A stretch of 64,000 bases of DNA. Origin: Lepidodermella squamata (taxonomy: Eukaryota; Animalia; Gastrotricha). The stretch spans positions 620,001 through 684,000 of the forward strand of contig JBLDXI010000001.1 of the NCBI GenBank assembly GCA_047495785.1. The letters are read 5' to 3'. A model generated the notes under the pieces. It saw only the letters and a program-made list of their open reading frames with translations. It was not told where the DNA came from and did not search any database. Below, in pieces: positions 5,494 to 17,663 of the stretch (within the stretch, counting starts at the first letter, position 1; each line of letters starts with the position of its first letter). The position numbers and the translations under genes were made by a program.

Positions 5494-6676
5494 ATAACAA
5501 AACTGTCTTCTAATGAAAATCGAAATTAATATCTGTTTGATAATTCAACGTCATAATTTTTCATTGCTAATTTGGTTAAGCAAACCTTCGTATGATCTTA
5601 TTTTACCAAAATACTAATCTTTAAATTTACTTAATCTCTTGTCTGTGGGAAGTTTAGAAATTAAAAGCATGAGACATTTTTGACGGTTTATTTTTCATAA
5701 GAAACACATAACACAACTGGTTTGCCGAGTGCTGTCCATCTTCTATCCGGACTCATTATCTACTGTTTTTTAGACAGAGCTTATCGCATATTATGACCAG
5801 CGTTGCATGCTTCATCGACAGACATCAAACAAGCTATTTTTATTTTTCAAATCTGAGAAATTCATCGAACACCTTGATGTTTCATTAATGTGCTATTTCT
5901 CTATTAATTCTATAACGTGAATCTTATTGCGAGATGCAACTTTGTCTGAACGTTGCAGTAAACTTATTTTGATTTGATGATAATATATTATATTTAGGAC
6001 TGATTGTAAAACCACAAATAAAAATCATTTATCACTGTAACTGCACCAGTTCTTTTGTTGTTGTGAAGTCCCGAGTCCTAGAATGAATGAGCACTTGCCA
6101 ACAACAACCGGGCTCAATCTACAAGTCCTCAGTGAGTAATTCATCGGCGTTACCAACGTGACATCAATGCGATGTGGTGAAAACAAGATACCGATCGATA
6201 AAACAAGCCTACAAAATCATCAGATCAATAGGCGTCGTTTCGTTGCCAGGTATTTCGCGCCTGTCGCTCACAACCTTACACAGGGGGTATGATCAATGTT
6301 TTTATGACTAACTAAGAAAATAACTCATGTGGTTTCCAGCGCAAAACTGCGATAGAGTAATTATGTGAGTTTTATTATCTTCTCTCTTCCAGAAGCAGTG
6401 TAAAATTAAAAAAGTAGAGACAGCCCGATGCTATAACAATCGATTTTCTAACGCAATTTTCCAGCTTCGTCAGTTCTACGAACATGTAAAGAGAAACAAA
6501 AAGTAGGCAGTGGGTTTTGACGATAAGCTTATCAATAATTGAACGTAATATATTTCATTTTTTTCGTACAAGGAAATTTTATCGCGCATGGCTGCCGTTT
6601 CCTTTAACGGTTTCGCGCACCGGATTTGTATGAAATCTATGAAATCCAAACACTAGACCCGTCTCGATGAAAAAAC

Positions 6677-9611
6677 CTATCGACGCCGTTTCTTAGAACA
6701 TTCAGGAGCGAGGCAAAACGTATAGTCGAGAGGTCTTTCTATCGTGGCGCAATAGCTTTCGTCCAGGTAGAGCATGTCAAACTCCGAAGGCCGATTCAAA
6801 GGCTGACAGCGAACCGATAGATCAAGTATGGCTATGTCGAAATTGCTTAGACACCGTTGCGTATCACACTGAAAAATGAGATTAAAAGCAAACATGAATG
6901 CAATTTTACGTAAAAGAGTCATTACTGTTCCAGTTTTTTGAATAGTCCAACTAGGAGAAAGTGTTGATCGACATTTATCTGTAAATGGAGCCTGCAATAA
7001 CGCTGGCTCTTTTGCTCGAGAAGCACTATTGGTTCTGATTTGTTTCGAGTGAATTTCTTCCAGTTCCAAGCATATATTTCTGTGGAGAAAACTGATTGCT
7101 GACGGCTGTGAGATCGCCGATTCCTCCGAATCGCTACTACGACGAATCGCGCACCCAACAACGCAGGATTTTGAGTCGAATTCGACACAATTATCACGAT
7201 TTTCACTATGACATTTGTCCGAAACATACAGCGATGCTTCTAGTTTCTTATTCCAGGCTGCTGTTGTCAAGAAATTGAACTTATGTTTGATTGTTTCGTT
7301 AGCCTGGTCGAAAATAACACTGTCGACCCTTTGCCATTTGAATGTTGTGGTAGTTTCGAGTCCGAAATGGCTTCGCATAGTCTCCACGTTAGGCATGACA
7401 ACTATTTGACTGGTAAACTCCGATATCGTCTGATCGGGTTGCCTGATCAAGCATGAATAGTTACCAGCTGAATCTAGAGAAATCGGTTTAGCGTGATACA
7501 ACGAGCTGGTCAGTACAGATGGGCGGGCCGACACCCAATTCTGTGTTACTGGTTGGCCGTCTTTCAGCCATTCGATTGAAGAATTTACGGAGGCGGGGCA
7601 AATCAGCGTAATCGATGAATGAGAAGACGGAAGCGCGTATATGTGACCGCCAACAAAATGAGTTATTTCAACAGCCTCAGCCCTGAATTGCAAATAAAAT
7701 AGAATGCACAAAAATAAACAGTGATAGCGACGTCCTTACAGGTAAACATGCGTGGACGGGTCAAACAGAGTTTCCAATTCGGCGCATTTCGCTAAGGTGA
7801 GGCAGCGTCGAGCAGAGACTGGCCGGTGATTTGGTGTTGATAGCTCTTGTTGGTGATCCTCACAGACTGCATCTTGGACGTATTCATAATAACCAGCTCG
7901 TATCGGGAGAATGCAAGACACGTTACGTAATTGCCAGCCGACACCACAGACCTCGCTACACTGTTTTCGATTTTAAATTCAAAAACTGTAACTCTTTAAT
8001 TATTGAGACACTACCTCAGACCAAGGTCCTGTCTTCCAGATAGGATTACACGGTCCTGCATTGCAAGAAATCGCTGAAGGTGGACGATCGAATGGTTGGC
8101 ACATGAACTCGGGCAGTTCTTCGTCTAGGCTTATTTCGGGCTGACGGCGAATGCAGCGCGATGATTGGAACTTTATGCCGGTGCCACAGGTGACCGAACA
8201 ATCGCTAGTATTCGTTATTTGCCACTCGGGCAAACAAGAATCCGTGCCGCACAATTCGTACTTTTCGATTGGTCGACTTCTGTTGGCACAGTGGTAGTCA
8301 TCCACAGGCTTTTGGGTAGTTTCTGTTATGCCAAAACACAGTACCAAGTTCTTACGGTAACCACCTCCACAAGTTTGACTACACGTGGAAAAGCCTGGAG
8401 AAAGTATATTAAGATATGGGCATGAAAATATGGCGGGGTTTATCGACTAACCTGTTTCGACCCATTCAAAGGCCTGGAACTGTTCATCCGGCTCATCTGG
8501 CTCGTCTTTGAAGTTCCCACACGACACAAAATAAGTTTTACAGGGCTCTTGCTCGTGGGGTTTGACCTGTCCAGCGCATTCTTCCTCTGGAATGTCAGCA
8601 TACAAGCGAAGCTCGGGAAAATAACGCCGGCATTGGACAACCCTGTACCGAATACCCGGCTTTGTGCCACACGTTCGGCTGCATTGACTCCATTCGCCAG
8701 TTTGGTATTTAGGTTTCAAATCACGTGGCTGGACGCGCACGATCAACTCTGGCCGTTGTTGCGCGTAATTACCACCTTGTCGTGCTTCCATAGAAATCTT
8801 GCTCGAGCGAACGCATGTATCATCTGGGAAGCTGTTGCAAGGTCTTTGAGACTGCGGTCGTAGTAGCGGATCACATGGCTGCCGTTTTGGCAGCTTTCGG
8901 AGGCAGCGAATTTGACGTGTTTGAATACCGCTACTACACGAAGCCGAGCACTTGGACCACGGTGAAACTCGCCAGTGGGAACAGCGCTGCGTTGGGCATA
9001 TTTTCTCGTCTGGCGGTTTCGCTTGACCGGTTCGGGCACACACGTGATCGGCAACCTCTTCGAAGGCTGGTCCGGCGGGCGGGAGTGCTGTTCCGTAGCG
9101 AACACACGTGACTCGACGTTGCACAACGCCGAGGCCACAGTTTGCCGAGCAGTTTTCCCATAAACCTACCTCCCAGCGAGGCTCGCAGTCTGCAAGTTTA
9201 CAACTTCGCTTTATTGTCAGCGGCTTGCGATTAGGGTCACATTTACTATCAGGTACCTATGGAAAAAACTTAGGGAGTGATGGAAAAAACTACAATTATC
9301 TCTTATACAAATTTTCCGGTCGTGGGCGAATAGCATCGATAGTTGACTCCAATGACACCAATGCCACAGGTAACCGAGCATGAGGTTGCCTGTTCGCGCC
9401 ATGTGAAACGATGAACAACTGATGTGGAAATGTTCCGACGATGTAGCCGGATGTACTGCGATGAGGGTATTGGCAAGGCAATTGGCTGGTGGTTGTCGTT
9501 ATTGGTGCTTGAGCTGATGAGTCGCTGGCGTTGTCGGTGCCCGATGGCATGTGAGGCGAAGCAACATAAGACGCCGAGATATACAACAAGCAGCGTTTTA
9601 ATTTCGGCCAT
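6677..9611 (-). CDS. Secreted ADAMTS-like protein (ADAMTSL1/3, MADD-4/Punctin-like): signal peptide, multiple TSP1 repeats, Ig domain
   Basis: Signal peptide MAEIKTLLVVYLGVLCCFASHAIG. TSP1 motifs CSVTCGIG, WENCSANCGLG, WSKCSASCSSG, WSQCSRTCG, CSVTCGTG. Ig domain (ITLICP...IEWLKDGQP...SAGNYSC). No metalloprotease domain. Exon 1 is 9309-9611 and exon 2 starts at 9256; later boundaries are approximate. Confidence 0.8.
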
Positions 9612-12600: not shown

Positions 12601-13157
12601 CAAACTGCTCTTTTCATTGCTTATTCGTCAACCTGATCCTTCTCAGCGACACAAAGTAACACAATTTCCATCAAAATTGATCCTGCAGGCCAAATTATTT
12701 AGGTTACAGTGTATAGTCGTTTGATGATTCCTTCAAATTGAGTTATTTTTACTCGGGTTTACAGACGAATCGTGCTGGAAGCTGGAGGCAAACAAAGATT
12801 TTGATCATATACTTGACGCTCAAAGAGCGCATCGATTTGATGCATTTTACCGAAATCAATTGGTGGTTAGCAACACGCTCGCGCTTTTTTAGCGCGAAGC
12901 GCTTATTTACTCAGGTCGCACTATAAGACAATAGAAAGGTGTCTCGAGGCGGCCTCTAAGCGAGAGGGAAATTCAAGAAAAAACTTGCGTTTGAATGATT
13001 AATAATTCATTGAGCATCTCACACAAAGAAATGATGCAAACTGCTGACGGAGGCATTTTTGTCAAGCACTATATTCTATCCTGCTCGAAGAGAACAGCAA
13101 CAATAAAGAAGTCGGTATTATCGACACACATTTTTTCTCGAATTTGAACCGTCATTT

Positions 13158-14905
13158 ATGGGTTCTGTGAACTTTGCAGCCCTGATATTGGGTCTAGCGT
13201 TAGGGTTAACCAGCGCAACAGATGTTTTCGTCAGGCCTCAGGGATGCCCAAATGACATAAGGCTGATTGTCGACGATTCTTACCGCGATTTCGCGAATTA
13301 TACCCTCGAACAATGTGCGGGTCAATGCTTGGCCGACGGAACGTGGTGCCGTTCGTTTTCTTATTACGACGACCCAGCTAATGCTACGAAAACTTGCGTG
13401 TTAAACATCGGTCATGCTGATGCTATGTGGACTGGGCTGGTCTTTGCCAAATTTTGGTCCTACTATGAAAGGGTTCGTTTCGCGAACTTCGCGCAATTTC
13501 CGAATAAACGTTTGTTTTCGCTGTAGATAACCGAGGAGACTGGCTTGCAGAACTTTGGAATCACTCCAATTACCACATGCCAAACCAGAATTTTCCGTGA
13601 TTGCAAACAGGCTGCAATGGCGTTAGGATTCACCTCCCCTCAGCAAGTCATGATTAAGTTGGACGACCTGCAGTACGCGGTGCCAGCCCTGTGTCAAAGC
13701 ACCAACGCCAACAACGGTAAAATAATAAAGCATAAAGAAAATGTCCGTTCCAACTTCCTAAAACTTTTCTAGAGCTTGTTATGCTTTCGAGAACTGGCCT
13801 TGGCTTTTACGATATTAGCTGGAATCGAAACTGGGAGGAATACAAATATGGCTTTGGCCGCGATAGCAGCAATTTCTGGATGGGTCTCGAATTCATGTAC
13901 CAAATCACCAACCAAGGTATTGTCTTTTGATCCCTTCTTAAACTGTTCTTTGAAAACTGTTTCATTTAGATTATCTTTTGAGGTGGTCTGGAAGTGGCCG
14001 CTGTATTTTCCCTCGAAAGATTAACGGCACAGCTCAGCGCTTCACAATTTCGGATGTGACGAATGGACGTTGCCCGTGGTGGAGCATCCGAGCTGACGGA
14101 AAAATCGTCATGTCTCAGCGATCTCTCTGCATTTGCGAAGATACCGTAAATCCAGGAGGTATCGGCCACGTTGCTCTTTGCGGCTGTAACGAACCGAATC
14201 GCTATCAAGTTCGACAATAAATTCAAAGTGATTATAATTCTTTAATGAATATCATTATTTTTACAGTTCATTTACTCTACACCGCTAAATATGATCATGT
14301 CAGTTCGACCAAATACTGGAAACAGGTGTTTGAAAATCACATCAGATAACAACGGAGAGGAAGTCATTGTAGCTGATTGCGATCAAAGCATTAATTTCTT
14401 CATTTGGTCCCTGAAAACTGGTCGCTATTCCACAATGTGGGTCAGCTGGGACATCACCAACACTAGGAGAGAATCTAAAGCTATTCGCACGGCGATGCTC
14501 GACGAATCAAACGGCTACCAGATTCAAGCTGATCAGGTCAGAAAAAGGCTTAAATCAAGTGATTTATTAGGGAAAAATTATAATTCCAGCTCAGCGGGTG
14601 TGCCACTCTCGGCCACAAGGTGTCACAGAATCAGAAATTCTCCACCTATGACCGTGATAACGACCGACAAGCTGATCAGAACCTTGCGCTTCGACAAGCC
14701 GGTGGTGACTGGTGGACCCAGCCGACCTGGTCAGACGGTGGAGACCCGAAATTTACAGCTATGAGAGAGTAAGAGCCACTAGTCATTTCATATTATTGTG
14801 TATTTATTTTCGATTTTTTCCCCCAGTGTGAGCAAATACAGCATGTGTGGCGGTTGGCTGATGAATGCCGTCATGTCTCTGGTAGCTGAAGATTGGCTTT
14901 TGTAA
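13158..14905 (+). CDS. Secreted PAN/apple + fibrinogen-related (FReD) protein with an internal ricin-B-like domain; exons 13158-13472, 13527-13716, 13773-13916, 13970-14208, 14267-14536, 14590-14768, 14827-14905
   Basis: Signal peptide, then PAN motif TLEQCAGQCL...CRSFSY...CVL. FReD motifs WNRNWEEYKYGFG..SSNFWMGLEFMYQITNQ and KFSTYDRDND...GGDWW. Three ricin-like C-x-x/V-x-L-x-x-C repeats lie between them. All six introns are GT-AG, 53-58 nt, and phase-consistent to TAA 14903-14905. Confidence 0.85.
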
Positions 14906-15189
14906 TTATCGACCGGTTAAACCCGTGCGGAACCAGATCTATATAAAATACTCTCGTGCCGTGATTTTCGTTCTTATCTCCCGTAAATTAAACATATTGA
15001 CAGCTGTACTATGAGATTCCCTCTTCACCAGAATGAAATTCTTGACATGGCAAGCTAGATAATTTGCGAAATAAAACAGCGTTTGGTTTCAATAGATCGA
15101 GACCAATATTTATTACAATAATAATTGAAACAAACAAACGATGCAAATTTACGATACAAACTTGACAATAATAAAAAAGACAACGAATT

Positions 15190-17663
15190 TCATCGATTTT
15201 GTTGTTGCTGCTGAAAGTGCATCGAAGCAGCGTATAAATTTTGCGCTTGCATAAGCTGCTGCGGCGACAGCCCAATCGGAACGCCGTTCGGATACATCGG
15301 TGGCGAGAAGGGCGAGAAATTCGCGGCAGCAGCCATCGCGGCACCAGGAGGAGGGGAACTTAGCAAAAACTGCTGTTGCTGTTGCTGGATTTGCCGTTGC
15401 TGCTGCATCATTTGCTGCGATTGCTGGGCCGCAGCCATCATATGCGAGGGCATCGCTTGCTGTTGCTGGTGCTGCTGCATTTGCTGCTGAGCAGCCATCA
15501 GATTCGGCTGCTGATGTTGCTGCATCTGCGGCTGAGCGGCGTAATTCTGCTGCAGCATGGCCGGTGGCACTCGCGGCGAGATTTGGGCTTGACTATGGCC
15601 CTGGTGCTGGGTTTGGACCATCATTCCACTAGACGATGGAGCAGCTGCGACTGGTTGGTTCACATGGGGAGGTGATCCCACCAAGTTTTGCTGCGGCCAC
15701 TAAAAACGAAATAAACCGCGTTTAAATTAGAAAAATTCAAATATTATATCACACACCATCATCAGATTGTTGTGCTCAGGTAACGCTTTAGCAGCGGCAG
15801 TTTCGTCGACTAGAGCCTTTGTCATAATACCAGCATCTGCTGTGTAAGAATGAGCCATTTGCTCCAAGAAATTGGCCTGTTGTTGGGCGCCTTGCTGAAG
15901 AAAGAGGCGACTCTCCAAGAAACAAGTGTCAGCTAAAAATCTGACTGACACTGCAGTTAGTTCTGTGTCTCCCGAAGCTTTAGCCTGGTTTGACGAGAAT
16001 TCAATGTGCTCCTTGGCACCAGTTGGGTTTTGATGAATCAGGAAGATGTAACCAAGTAGCAATCTGGATAGCAGGTTCATTCGGCTTAAACCTTCCGGGG
16101 TGGAGAATTGTAGAGCCCTTGTCAACGCTTCCCTCGCCTCGTTCGGCTTTCGCTGGCCGAGAGATAATACCGCGATGCAATATTCACGCGCGGCCCGGAG
16201 CAGAGCAGGTGGGCTAGCCCTGCTACTTGCGATAACTTCGTCATAGCGCTGAAGAAGCATCGAAGCTTCTGTTTTTCGGTTCATTTTCGAAAGCAGTAGA
16301 CAACGTGATAACTCGACAACGTAGCCCATTTCACGATCAGGACATTCGAGTTGCTGCGTTTGAATCGACTGCATGTGCCAATCGGCGACGTCAGCCCGGC
16401 CCATAAGGTGGTAATAGAATCCTAGCAAAAGCCTGACACGGTATTCAAATCGCTTGGCTACTCTATCTGAGCAGTGCGGCAGAACAGAAATCATTTTTCC
16501 AATATTGACGATAGCTAAAGATCGCTTCTCCGAGATTAGGTACGATTGAGCTAGATTTTCCAGGTAAATAAGCGATAGCCGAGGAATCAATGGATGCCTA
16601 GGATCGTTCGACGACTTGTAAACCTCAAGAGCTTGCAGGCCCTTTTCAACATTTCGTCTGACTCGGTCAGACCGGCCCGCCTGGAGCTCGTACATTGAAG
16701 TTACTGCCGAAACGATGATATAAAGCAGATCGCGAGACAGCCAGACAAATTTGTCATGGGCATTCGCCAAATTATTTTGAGGTATCGCAGATATCGGTTC
16801 TGGCGCGTAGCCCATCAAGGTGGTCAGGGCATCTTGCAATTGCTTCAAAGGTCCAGCGGCAGTGTTAACCTAAGGTGAGAAAAATATGCAATAAATATTA
16901 TTTAATAAAATGCAACTTTTCAAACCTGAGATGCATATAAAAAATGGCATGTCTGCATAATCAAGAATAGCACCTTGCAGACTTCACGCTGACGTTGATT
17001 TTCCGTGTAAGCGTTTATCAGTACGCTACAAGCTCCCAAAACTCCATCGACGCCGCCAAATTCTCGTTGTATTAGCAATAACATTCCATGTCCCAGCTTG
17101 AAGACGATCCGAGCATATTGCGCGCCAAAACGAGATGCGACATCATCGCCCATTGTCAAATAGTAGATCGATGATTTTATATTGCCGTCGTCCATGGCAA
17201 GCTGGGCTAGCTGAAGTAAAATTCGACAACTCCAATATGAACTATTTACGGTGTCTTTGTGAACACTTTGAAGTAATGTATACGCTTGTTGCATTTTGCC
17301 TTTCAACGCATACGCTTTGGAAAGTTGAGACGCGGATTCGAAATAGCAGTCTGGCATATTTAGACTGCCAAATAAGTTCATTGCTCTTTCTAGATGACCA
17401 ATAATCAGATCATATTGCTTAGTGTGCTTCAGGAGTAGACTGCCGATTTGTAAATGAACTCGCGCCTCTATTTTAGCCGGAGGCTGCGACGATACCAAAC
17501 AGATCAAACAATGAACCGAATAGCGAATATTTGGAGGACTTTGTTGGCGAAAATATTCAGCAAGGCCCCATAGAGCCAACCAGTAGTCATCAGAAGGTTC
17601 GCTTTTCATCAACTGCGTGGTTTGTTGGATGACGCTGCTCATTCCAACACCATGAGCTTGCAT
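15190..17663 (-). CDS. MAU2: MAU2/Scc4 cohesin loader subunit with Q-rich C-terminal extension; exons 16926-17663, 15757-16869, 15190-15699
   Basis: YWLALWGLAEYFRQQSPPNIRYSVHCL...EARVHLQIGSLL at the N-terminus, LKQLQ, and the C-terminal LPEHNNLMMW all match MAU2. Confidence 0.92.

Follow-up and report, generated by a model that had tools for sequence, protein, structure and literature searches.

The stretch of DNA analyzed here, referred to as the window, comprises 64,000 nucleotides of the genome of the gastrotrich Lepidodermella squamata (contig JBLDXI010000001.1, positions 620,001 to 684,000), and coordinates below are positions in the window unless another sequence is named. Reading the region 12800-15300, we rebuilt one gene on the plus strand at 13158-14905. 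It consists of seven exons in one frame, 1416 nt in total, which give 471 codons and a TAA stop at 14903-14905. The six introns are 53-58 nt long and all have GT..AG ends. A preliminary description of this locus had joined seven exons by hand into a single open reading frame; this held in our reconstruction, in which all frames were open and the splice sites canonical, and every peptide string quoted in that description was found in the exon translations. Read in this way, the locus is one intact gene, whose predicted product carries a ricin-type domain nested in a fibrinogen-related domain (FReD) behind a PAN domain.

Exon 1 (13158-13472, ending in phase 0) encodes a signal peptide and a PAN/apple domain. 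The signal peptide was assigned by inspection to about 13158-13217, with the hydrophobic core AALILGLALGL and a predicted cleavage after ..TSA. The PAN domain starts at Cys30 (13245) and matched PAN_1 (PF00024) with 29.1 bits and an E-value of 9.2e-7 (cut-off 21.4) in Pfam scans, which were run exon by exon rather than on the spliced protein. Five cysteines lie in exon 1 and one lies early in exon 2 (13527-13716, phase 1 end), where the presumed last PAN cysteine is at 13578-13580. Exon 2 had no Pfam match. Its cysteine pattern and length suggest that it contains the end of the PAN domain followed by the FReD A subdomain, starting with RDC at 13593 and having its second cysteine in ..ALCQ... 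Exon 3 (13773-13916, phase 1 end) encodes the rest of the first FReD half, with the motif W..W..Y..GFG....FW.GLE....IT. It is followed by intron 3 (13917-13969, phase 1, with GT at 13917-13918 and AG at 13968-13969), which marks the 5' edge of the insert. Exon 4 (13970-14208) would encode lobes alpha and beta of a trefoil, including six of the eight cysteines of this domain and the motif RS.C.C.D ... L.CGCN. The first 51 codons of exon 5 (14267-14419) correspond to lobe gamma (..NRCLKIT...VIVADC...FFIW..), and its last 39 codons (14420-14536) resume the FReD (GRY...DESNGYQI..) in a continuous open frame with lobe gamma. Exon 6 (14590-14768, phase 2 end) encodes the P subdomain of the FReD, in which GGDWW and the calcium-site motif DRDND are found, and exon 7 (14827-14905) encodes the C-terminal FReD tail, which ends with ..AEDWLL before the TAA stop.

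A search of 1.84 billion representative proteins with exon 5 revealed a single match over the full exon, P0001, a protein of 210 aa predicted in prokaryote style on a metagenome scaffold from ENA (L024, 9732 bp). This scaffold carries an ortholog with the parts in the following order: an exon for the signal peptide and the PAN domain (PAN_1, 28.5 bits), the first half of the FReD, a fused exon of 170 aa equivalent to window exons 4 and 5, and a fused last exon equivalent to window exons 6 and 7. The ortholog thus has no introns 4 and 6. In a tblastx comparison, all seven window exons were collinear with the scaffold (exon 2 with its positions 8039-8283), and the introns had no match. The amino-acid identities of exons 1, 3, 4, 5 and 6 were 57, 60, 68, 39 and 58%, respectively, so that exon 4, with the first two trefoil lobes, is the best conserved part of the protein. 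The proportion of replacement changes (pN) was 0.32 and that of silent changes (pS) was 0.80, which is saturated. The saturated pS together with the low pN shows that the two genes are old orthologs under purifying selection. The ortholog has a phase-1 intron after ..MTNQ, at the same position as window intron 3, and the phase-1 intron that the preliminary description had placed at the 5' edge of the insert was thereby found in both genes. The splice of intron 6 is also supported by the ortholog, because the equivalent tail (..ADDWYY) continues there in one frame without an intron. No conserved synteny was detected by tblastx between the flanks of the ortholog and the window. A Sulfotransfer_2 gene lies directly upstream of the ortholog (5717-6545 of the scaffold, plus strand), and no counterpart was seen beside the window gene.

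The junction between the trefoil and the FReD is inside a single exon in the window gene, and likewise in the ortholog. As the last ricin-like repeat and the resumption of the FReD are both encoded by window exon 5, the nesting is independent of how the splice sites are called. The same fact, together with the identical order in the ortholog, answers the earlier question of whether the locus might consist of two separate genes. Constitutive skipping of exons 4 and 5 had been named as another observation that would speak against the nesting. When these exons are removed, a phase-1 end meets a phase-0 start and translation runs into stops in exon 6 after 19 codons; as the frame is broken, simple skipping offers no isoform lacking the insert. 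We also considered an annotation artefact: the hand splicing might have united a PAN-FReD fragment with a neighboring ricin-like gene, or the pieces of a decayed pseudogene. The gene model was built from sequence alone, and several FReD segments have diverged too far to be recognized by profiles, both of which would fit such an artefact. However, exon 5 spans the trefoil and the start of the second FReD half, the parts follow each other in the same way in the ortholog despite its lack of two introns, the frames are open with canonical splice sites throughout, replacement changes are far rarer than silent ones, and the omission of exons 4 and 5 breaks the frame. We therefore regard an artefact as very improbable.

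Whether the assembly process could have created the nesting was considered as well. The assembly statistics (121.2 Mb in 151 contigs) fit multiple-displacement-amplified DNA, which is prone to chimeric reads, and the published Lepidodermella squamata assembly was obtained from amplified DNA (122 Mbp, 157 contigs, N50 of 3.9 Mbp; PMC11660948). However, the same order of parts occurs on the independent metagenome scaffold, which rules out a chimera for practical purposes, and 14 paralog loci on four other contigs contain a PAN exon followed by a trefoil-like exon on the same strand. The probability that the nesting is an assembly product is, in our estimate, close to nil.

Two of the FReD exons were detected with the Fibrinogen_C profile (PF00147). 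Exon 3 alone matched profile positions 55-88 with 28.0 bits, above the cut-off of 22, and exon 6 alone matched positions 145-176 with 19 bits (E 1.4e-3), below this cut-off. A local FReD profile of 217 nodes was built from seven canonical FReDs of the Lepidodermella squamata genome, in which exon 3 covers nodes 52-84 and exon 6 covers nodes 139-173. Nodes 84 and 139 are separated by 181 residues in the window gene, 127 more than the 54 of a canonical FReD. This surplus has the length of a single ricin B domain (126 profile positions), and the FReD is accordingly not one contiguous domain of about 220 residues but is split by about 127 residues. From the RDC cysteine to node 52, the N-terminal part spans about 53 residues (50 in the canonical domain), and beyond node 173 the C-terminal part spans about 39 (44 in the canonical domain). 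These near-canonical lengths on both sides suggest that the FReD is full-length but split. The spacing from RY to the conserved Y after the insert, counted by eye, is 30 residues and equals that of the canonical FReDs in this genome. Profile coordinates and length counts were used because a MAFFT alignment of the exon fragments to canonical FReDs misplaced exons 2, 5 and 7 and was dropped. Exon 3 matched 55 other FReD places in the genome and exon 6 matched four, including canonical FReDs on contig C24, with 45-57% identity over the motifs. The window gene and the ortholog alike retain GGDWW and the D-x-D-x-D calcium-site motif (DRDND), a putative metal site.

The identity of the insert was clearer in the ortholog than in the window gene. 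Exon 5 of the window gene matched Ricin_B_lectin (PF00652) weakly (16.1 bits, E 0.013, profile positions 48-86), and exon 4 alone had no match to this profile, for which the Pfam cut-off is 29 bits. The fused exon of the ortholog matched it with 30.3 bits (E 5.5e-7), its residues 8-127 covering profile positions 10-126 of 126. The preliminary description had expected a split Fibrinogen_C match around a Ricin_B match plus PAN_1; PAN_1 and the split Fibrinogen_C were recovered in the window gene by the exon-wise scans, but its Ricin_B match remained below the cut-off. A local ricin profile was constructed from four ricin domains of this genome and P0004, a bacterial (QxW)3 lectin that matched exon 5 with an E-value of 2.9e-4 in a phmmer search of 1.84 billion proteins. 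Exon 4 aligned with positions 15-79 of this profile, which correspond to the alpha and beta lobes, and a further lobe was matched by the beginning of exon 5. With language-model features, the insert of the ortholog fell solely among ricin-type clusters. A search of PDB sequences gave the GalNAc-T2 lectin domain as the best match, which was weak (E 0.69).

The structure of the ortholog's 130-residue insert was predicted by AlphaFold2 (AF2) using a 22-row alignment, giving a predicted local distance difference test (pLDDT) value of 80.6 and a predicted template modeling (pTM) score of 0.77. A Foldseek search using this model revealed only R-type trefoils among the PDB and ESM Atlas matches, with TM-scores of 0.6-0.76. 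The PDB matches included ribosome-inactivating protein (RIP) B chains, GalNAc-transferase lectin domains, the CBM13 structure 1knl (TM-scores 0.72/0.74), actinohivin and EW29, and the nearest ESM Atlas clusters all carry Ricin_B_lectin. The suggestion that the insert folds as a beta-trefoil was thus borne out by the ortholog's insert. The canonical cysteine pair is kept in each of the three lobes. Lobe beta has a second cysteine pair at position i-2 on both strands, which is invariant in the family and probably forms an extra disulfide. On the basis of the modeled ortholog, the insert is predicted to be a complete ricin-B-type beta-trefoil of about 120 residues with eight cysteines, situated in a loop of the FReD. 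The trefoil would be placed on the loop between the helix ending with GFG...FW.GLE...IT and the next beta-strand (GRY...). By the subdomain boundaries of the gamma chain, this loop is probably in the B subdomain, outside the ligand-binding P subdomain. The first and last strands of a beta-trefoil are adjacent, so that the domain can sit on a loop without disturbing its host.

The gene has relatives elsewhere in the genome. The PAN exon had 20 other genome matches with 32-46% identity; by contig, the PAN-exon matches number 15 on C13, three on C29, two on C40 and one on C46. We fetched 21 paralog loci, of which 14 contain a PAN exon and seven contain only a trefoil-like exon. The trefoil-like exon with RS.C.C.D ... 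L.CGCN is present in all 21, and in each of the 14 loci with a PAN exon it is found about 1 kb downstream on the same strand. Weak matches of window exon 4 also reach about 20 paralogs. The paralogs (L013-L034) share the double Cys-x-Cys motif and form local clusters at 3.08-4.40 Mb of C13 and on C29, C40 and C46, with four copies within 3517-3545 kb of C13. One of them (L025) has a 220-aa open frame that runs from lobe beta into ..ENGYRIY.. and ..GGGSWM.., and another (L028) has a FReD-like GFG...WLGLE, recognized by eye and without Pfam support, in one open frame with the insert. In searches of the paralogs for a FReD, neither Pfam nor the local FReD profile nor profiles of the window gene and ortholog gave a significant match, and faint matches were found at the expected positions. 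We infer from these arrangements that the paralogs share the full nested layout. If so, the window gene and its ortholog would be the least decayed and most FReD-like members of the family.

The protein is expected to be secreted, because a signal peptide is visible in both orthologs. Its most likely role is that of an extracellular multivalent binder in lectin-like recognition or adhesion, in which the PAN domain, the FReD P subdomain with its calcium site and the trefoil would be held in a fixed mutual geometry. Taken as a whole, the reading of the gene as a secreted PAN-FReD protein with a nested trefoil, belonging to a lineage-restricted family of about 20 paralogs and acting as a multivalent extracellular binder, is in our view probable.

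A number of observations, besides the sequence-only gene model mentioned above, weigh against this reading. As regards the FReD, three segments (exon 2, exon 7 and the 39 residues that follow the insert) were individually not significant with either the Pfam or the local FReD profile, and their assignment to the FReD is suggested by cysteine pattern, spacing and short motifs. Motifs and lengths are likewise the basis on which an undisturbed FReD fold around the insert is presumed. Exon 6 lacks the cysteine pair of the P subdomain: the canonical FReDs of this genome read ..CAK..GGWWY....C..ANLNG at this place, and the window gene reads ..LALRQAGGDWWTQPTW... As regards the insert, window exons 4 and 5 are each under the Ricin_B cut-off, and the call of this domain leans on the ortholog. 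The alignment that led to the confident AF2 prediction included five canonical ricin domains, and two of the five models were confident; with a 12-row alignment lacking canonical ricin domains, the prediction for the ortholog's 170-aa fused exon had a pLDDT of 36.6 and was unusable. The sugar-binding aspartate of the C-L-D motif occurs in lobe beta only, lobe alpha having F and lobe gamma K or R, and in an alignment to GalNAc-T2 the extra cysteine of lobe beta stands in place of the aromatic platform residue. In the paralogs, no FReD or ricin domain was detectable with Pfam.

In the ortholog, the (QxW)3 signature reads NQFIW (lobe beta) and QQW (lobe gamma); in the window gene, whose QxW positions are degenerate (PWW, YQF and FIW), these lobes have YQFIY and FFIW, respectively. 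In tachylectin-5A and the ficolins, the acetyl-group pocket is formed with the P-subdomain cysteine pair and a His/Tyr, a combination that the window gene does not have. Glycan binding at two of the three trefoil lobes and at the canonical FReD pocket is therefore doubtful, and some form of ligand binding by the protein is plausible. The preliminary description had counted three potential glycan- or protein-binding modules; the PAN domain, the FReD and the trefoil are all present, but the sugar-binding residues are only partly kept.

It is conceivable that the nested layout is real and that the protein is not a lectin. In that case, a decayed FReD would serve as a scaffold, and the trefoil and PAN domain would be used for protein binding, for a structural task in the cuticle, matrix or egg coat, or as a module resembling an inhibitor or toxin. 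The loss of the canonical aspartate in lobes alpha and gamma, the family-invariant cysteine in place of the lobe-beta aromatic residue and the missing P-subdomain disulfide are in agreement with this possibility, as is the paralog family, where the FReD signature has faded below detection and the core of PAN and trefoil persists. Beta-trefoils that bind ligands without being lectins are also well established. On the other hand, both orthologs retain DRDND and GGDWW, the lobe-beta aspartate is nearly invariant in all family members, and the host genome has a very large FReD repertoire, which is typical of recognition proteins. We consider a non-lectin function somewhat unlikely, and lectin-like recognition or adhesion remains our preferred interpretation.

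Among the pattern-recognition molecules of invertebrates, FReD proteins are a main class, whose diversity is usually ascribed to the shuffling of tandem partners. The predicted protein resembles the known FReD recognition proteins (ficolins, tachylectin-5A, and the snail FREPs, CREPs and GREPs) in being secreted and FReD-based, with partner modules that add binding sites. It also shares with them the W..Y..GFG..FW.G and D-x-D-x-D motifs, and its genome has a FReD expansion. However, the P-subdomain cysteine pair of the acetyl-binding pocket in ficolins and tachylectin-5A is missing from the window gene, and no immunoglobulin superfamily (IgSF) or collagen-like part, as in snail FREPs or ficolins, was found by Pfam in any window exon, where the N-terminal partner is the PAN domain. 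Known FReD proteins carry collagen, coiled-coil, IgSF, C-type lectin or galectin parts N-terminal to an uninterrupted FReD, whereas the window gene has its partner inside; surveys of rotifer and mollusc lectins likewise found FReD partners only in tandem (PMC8878817).

Compared with R-type lectins (the GalNAc-transferase lectin domain, CBM13 and EW29), the insert shows a shared Ricin_B_lectin match in the ortholog, three lobes with cysteine pairs and a modeled trefoil fold. The window insert differs from them in its degenerate QxW, in having the aspartate in lobe beta only and in the extra cysteine pair of that lobe. Moreover, R-type lectin domains are appended at a terminus, whereas this trefoil is inserted in a loop of another domain. 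The LCCL/LAP (CCp) proteins of apicomplexans are extracellular mosaics, like the predicted window protein. Some of them contain ricin B, and other members have an ambiguous FBG module overlapping COLFI, all in tandem (PMC11285972). They differ in being very large proteins of an unrelated lineage with tandem domains, no PAN-FReD core and no nesting.

In our literature searches, no FReD with a nested domain or a ricin partner was found. The junction of trefoil and FReD was not found in any protein besides the ortholog fragment P0001 among the 1.84 billion representatives, for which the query was exon 5, the least conserved exon. A word search with the ortholog exon also returned only P0001 from 5.8 billion proteins with a length filter of 94-297 aa, a size range that leaves full-length proteins of about 470 aa outside. 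Two scans of JGI metagenome contigs gave no relative. The earlier statement that no protein of this architecture has been described is thus in agreement with the literature and the database samples, apart from the ortholog. Three further proteins (P0002, P0003 and P0005) were rejected as relatives of exon 5, because they are repeat proteins whose scores are summed over many short stretches. P0003 (729 aa) is built from a unit of about 85 residues that recurs eight times nearly unchanged, and every copy has a ricin-lobe-like C...C..W that matches exon 5 (summed E 1e-6).

We tentatively propose, as a possibility that falls short of being likely, that this is the first FReD protein with a lectin fold nested inside and the least-decayed founder of a lineage-specific gastrotrich family of about 20 secreted members, in which the trefoil instead of the FReD is the conserved working part. 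Such a family would be a new class of recognition molecules in invertebrates, created when one domain was inserted into a loop of another. If a trefoil is tolerated in a FReD loop, there would be a second route to composite lectins, and the insertion loop would be a permissive site of the FReD fold, of possible use to protein engineers. A natural series on the fate of host and guest after a domain insertion may further be seen in the window gene, its ortholog and the decayed paralogs. What limits the interest is that all parts are from well-known families and that domain-in-domain insertions are generally not rare.

As to the origin of the insert, the preliminary description considered the 5' intron compatible with exon shuffling. 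The phase-1 intron at this edge is shared with the ortholog, but no copy has an intron at the 3' edge, and one paralog (L028) apparently has no intron at the 5' edge, so that exon shuffling is only weakly suggested. No close relative of the insert was found among the other Ricin_B_lectin matches in the genome (best BLASTP hit, 35% identity over 34 residues), and no donor gene can be named. There are about 20 such matches (L035-L054), four of which are full-length; they include C46:1547007-1547369 and C1:1824606-1824929 as well as matches on C58, C54 and C32.

The genome contains more than 150 Fibrinogen_C matches, most of them on contig C24 at about 1.85-4.63 Mb (e.g., L001-L005, L007 and L008). 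Several of these C24 FReDs are found in intron-free open frames of about 790 aa with three or four tandem FReDs. In the window itself, the upstream neighbor of the gene, on the minus strand at 8000-9124, encodes thrombospondin type-1 repeats (TSP1_ADAMTS, E 2e-22) and resembles a gene for an ADAMTS-like matrix protein. Downstream, a convergent cohesin-loading-factor gene (MAU2/Scc4, Cohesin_load) lies on the minus strand at 15190-17663, and its last coding stretch (15190-15684) encodes a long low-complexity tail rich in Gln, Ala and Pro.

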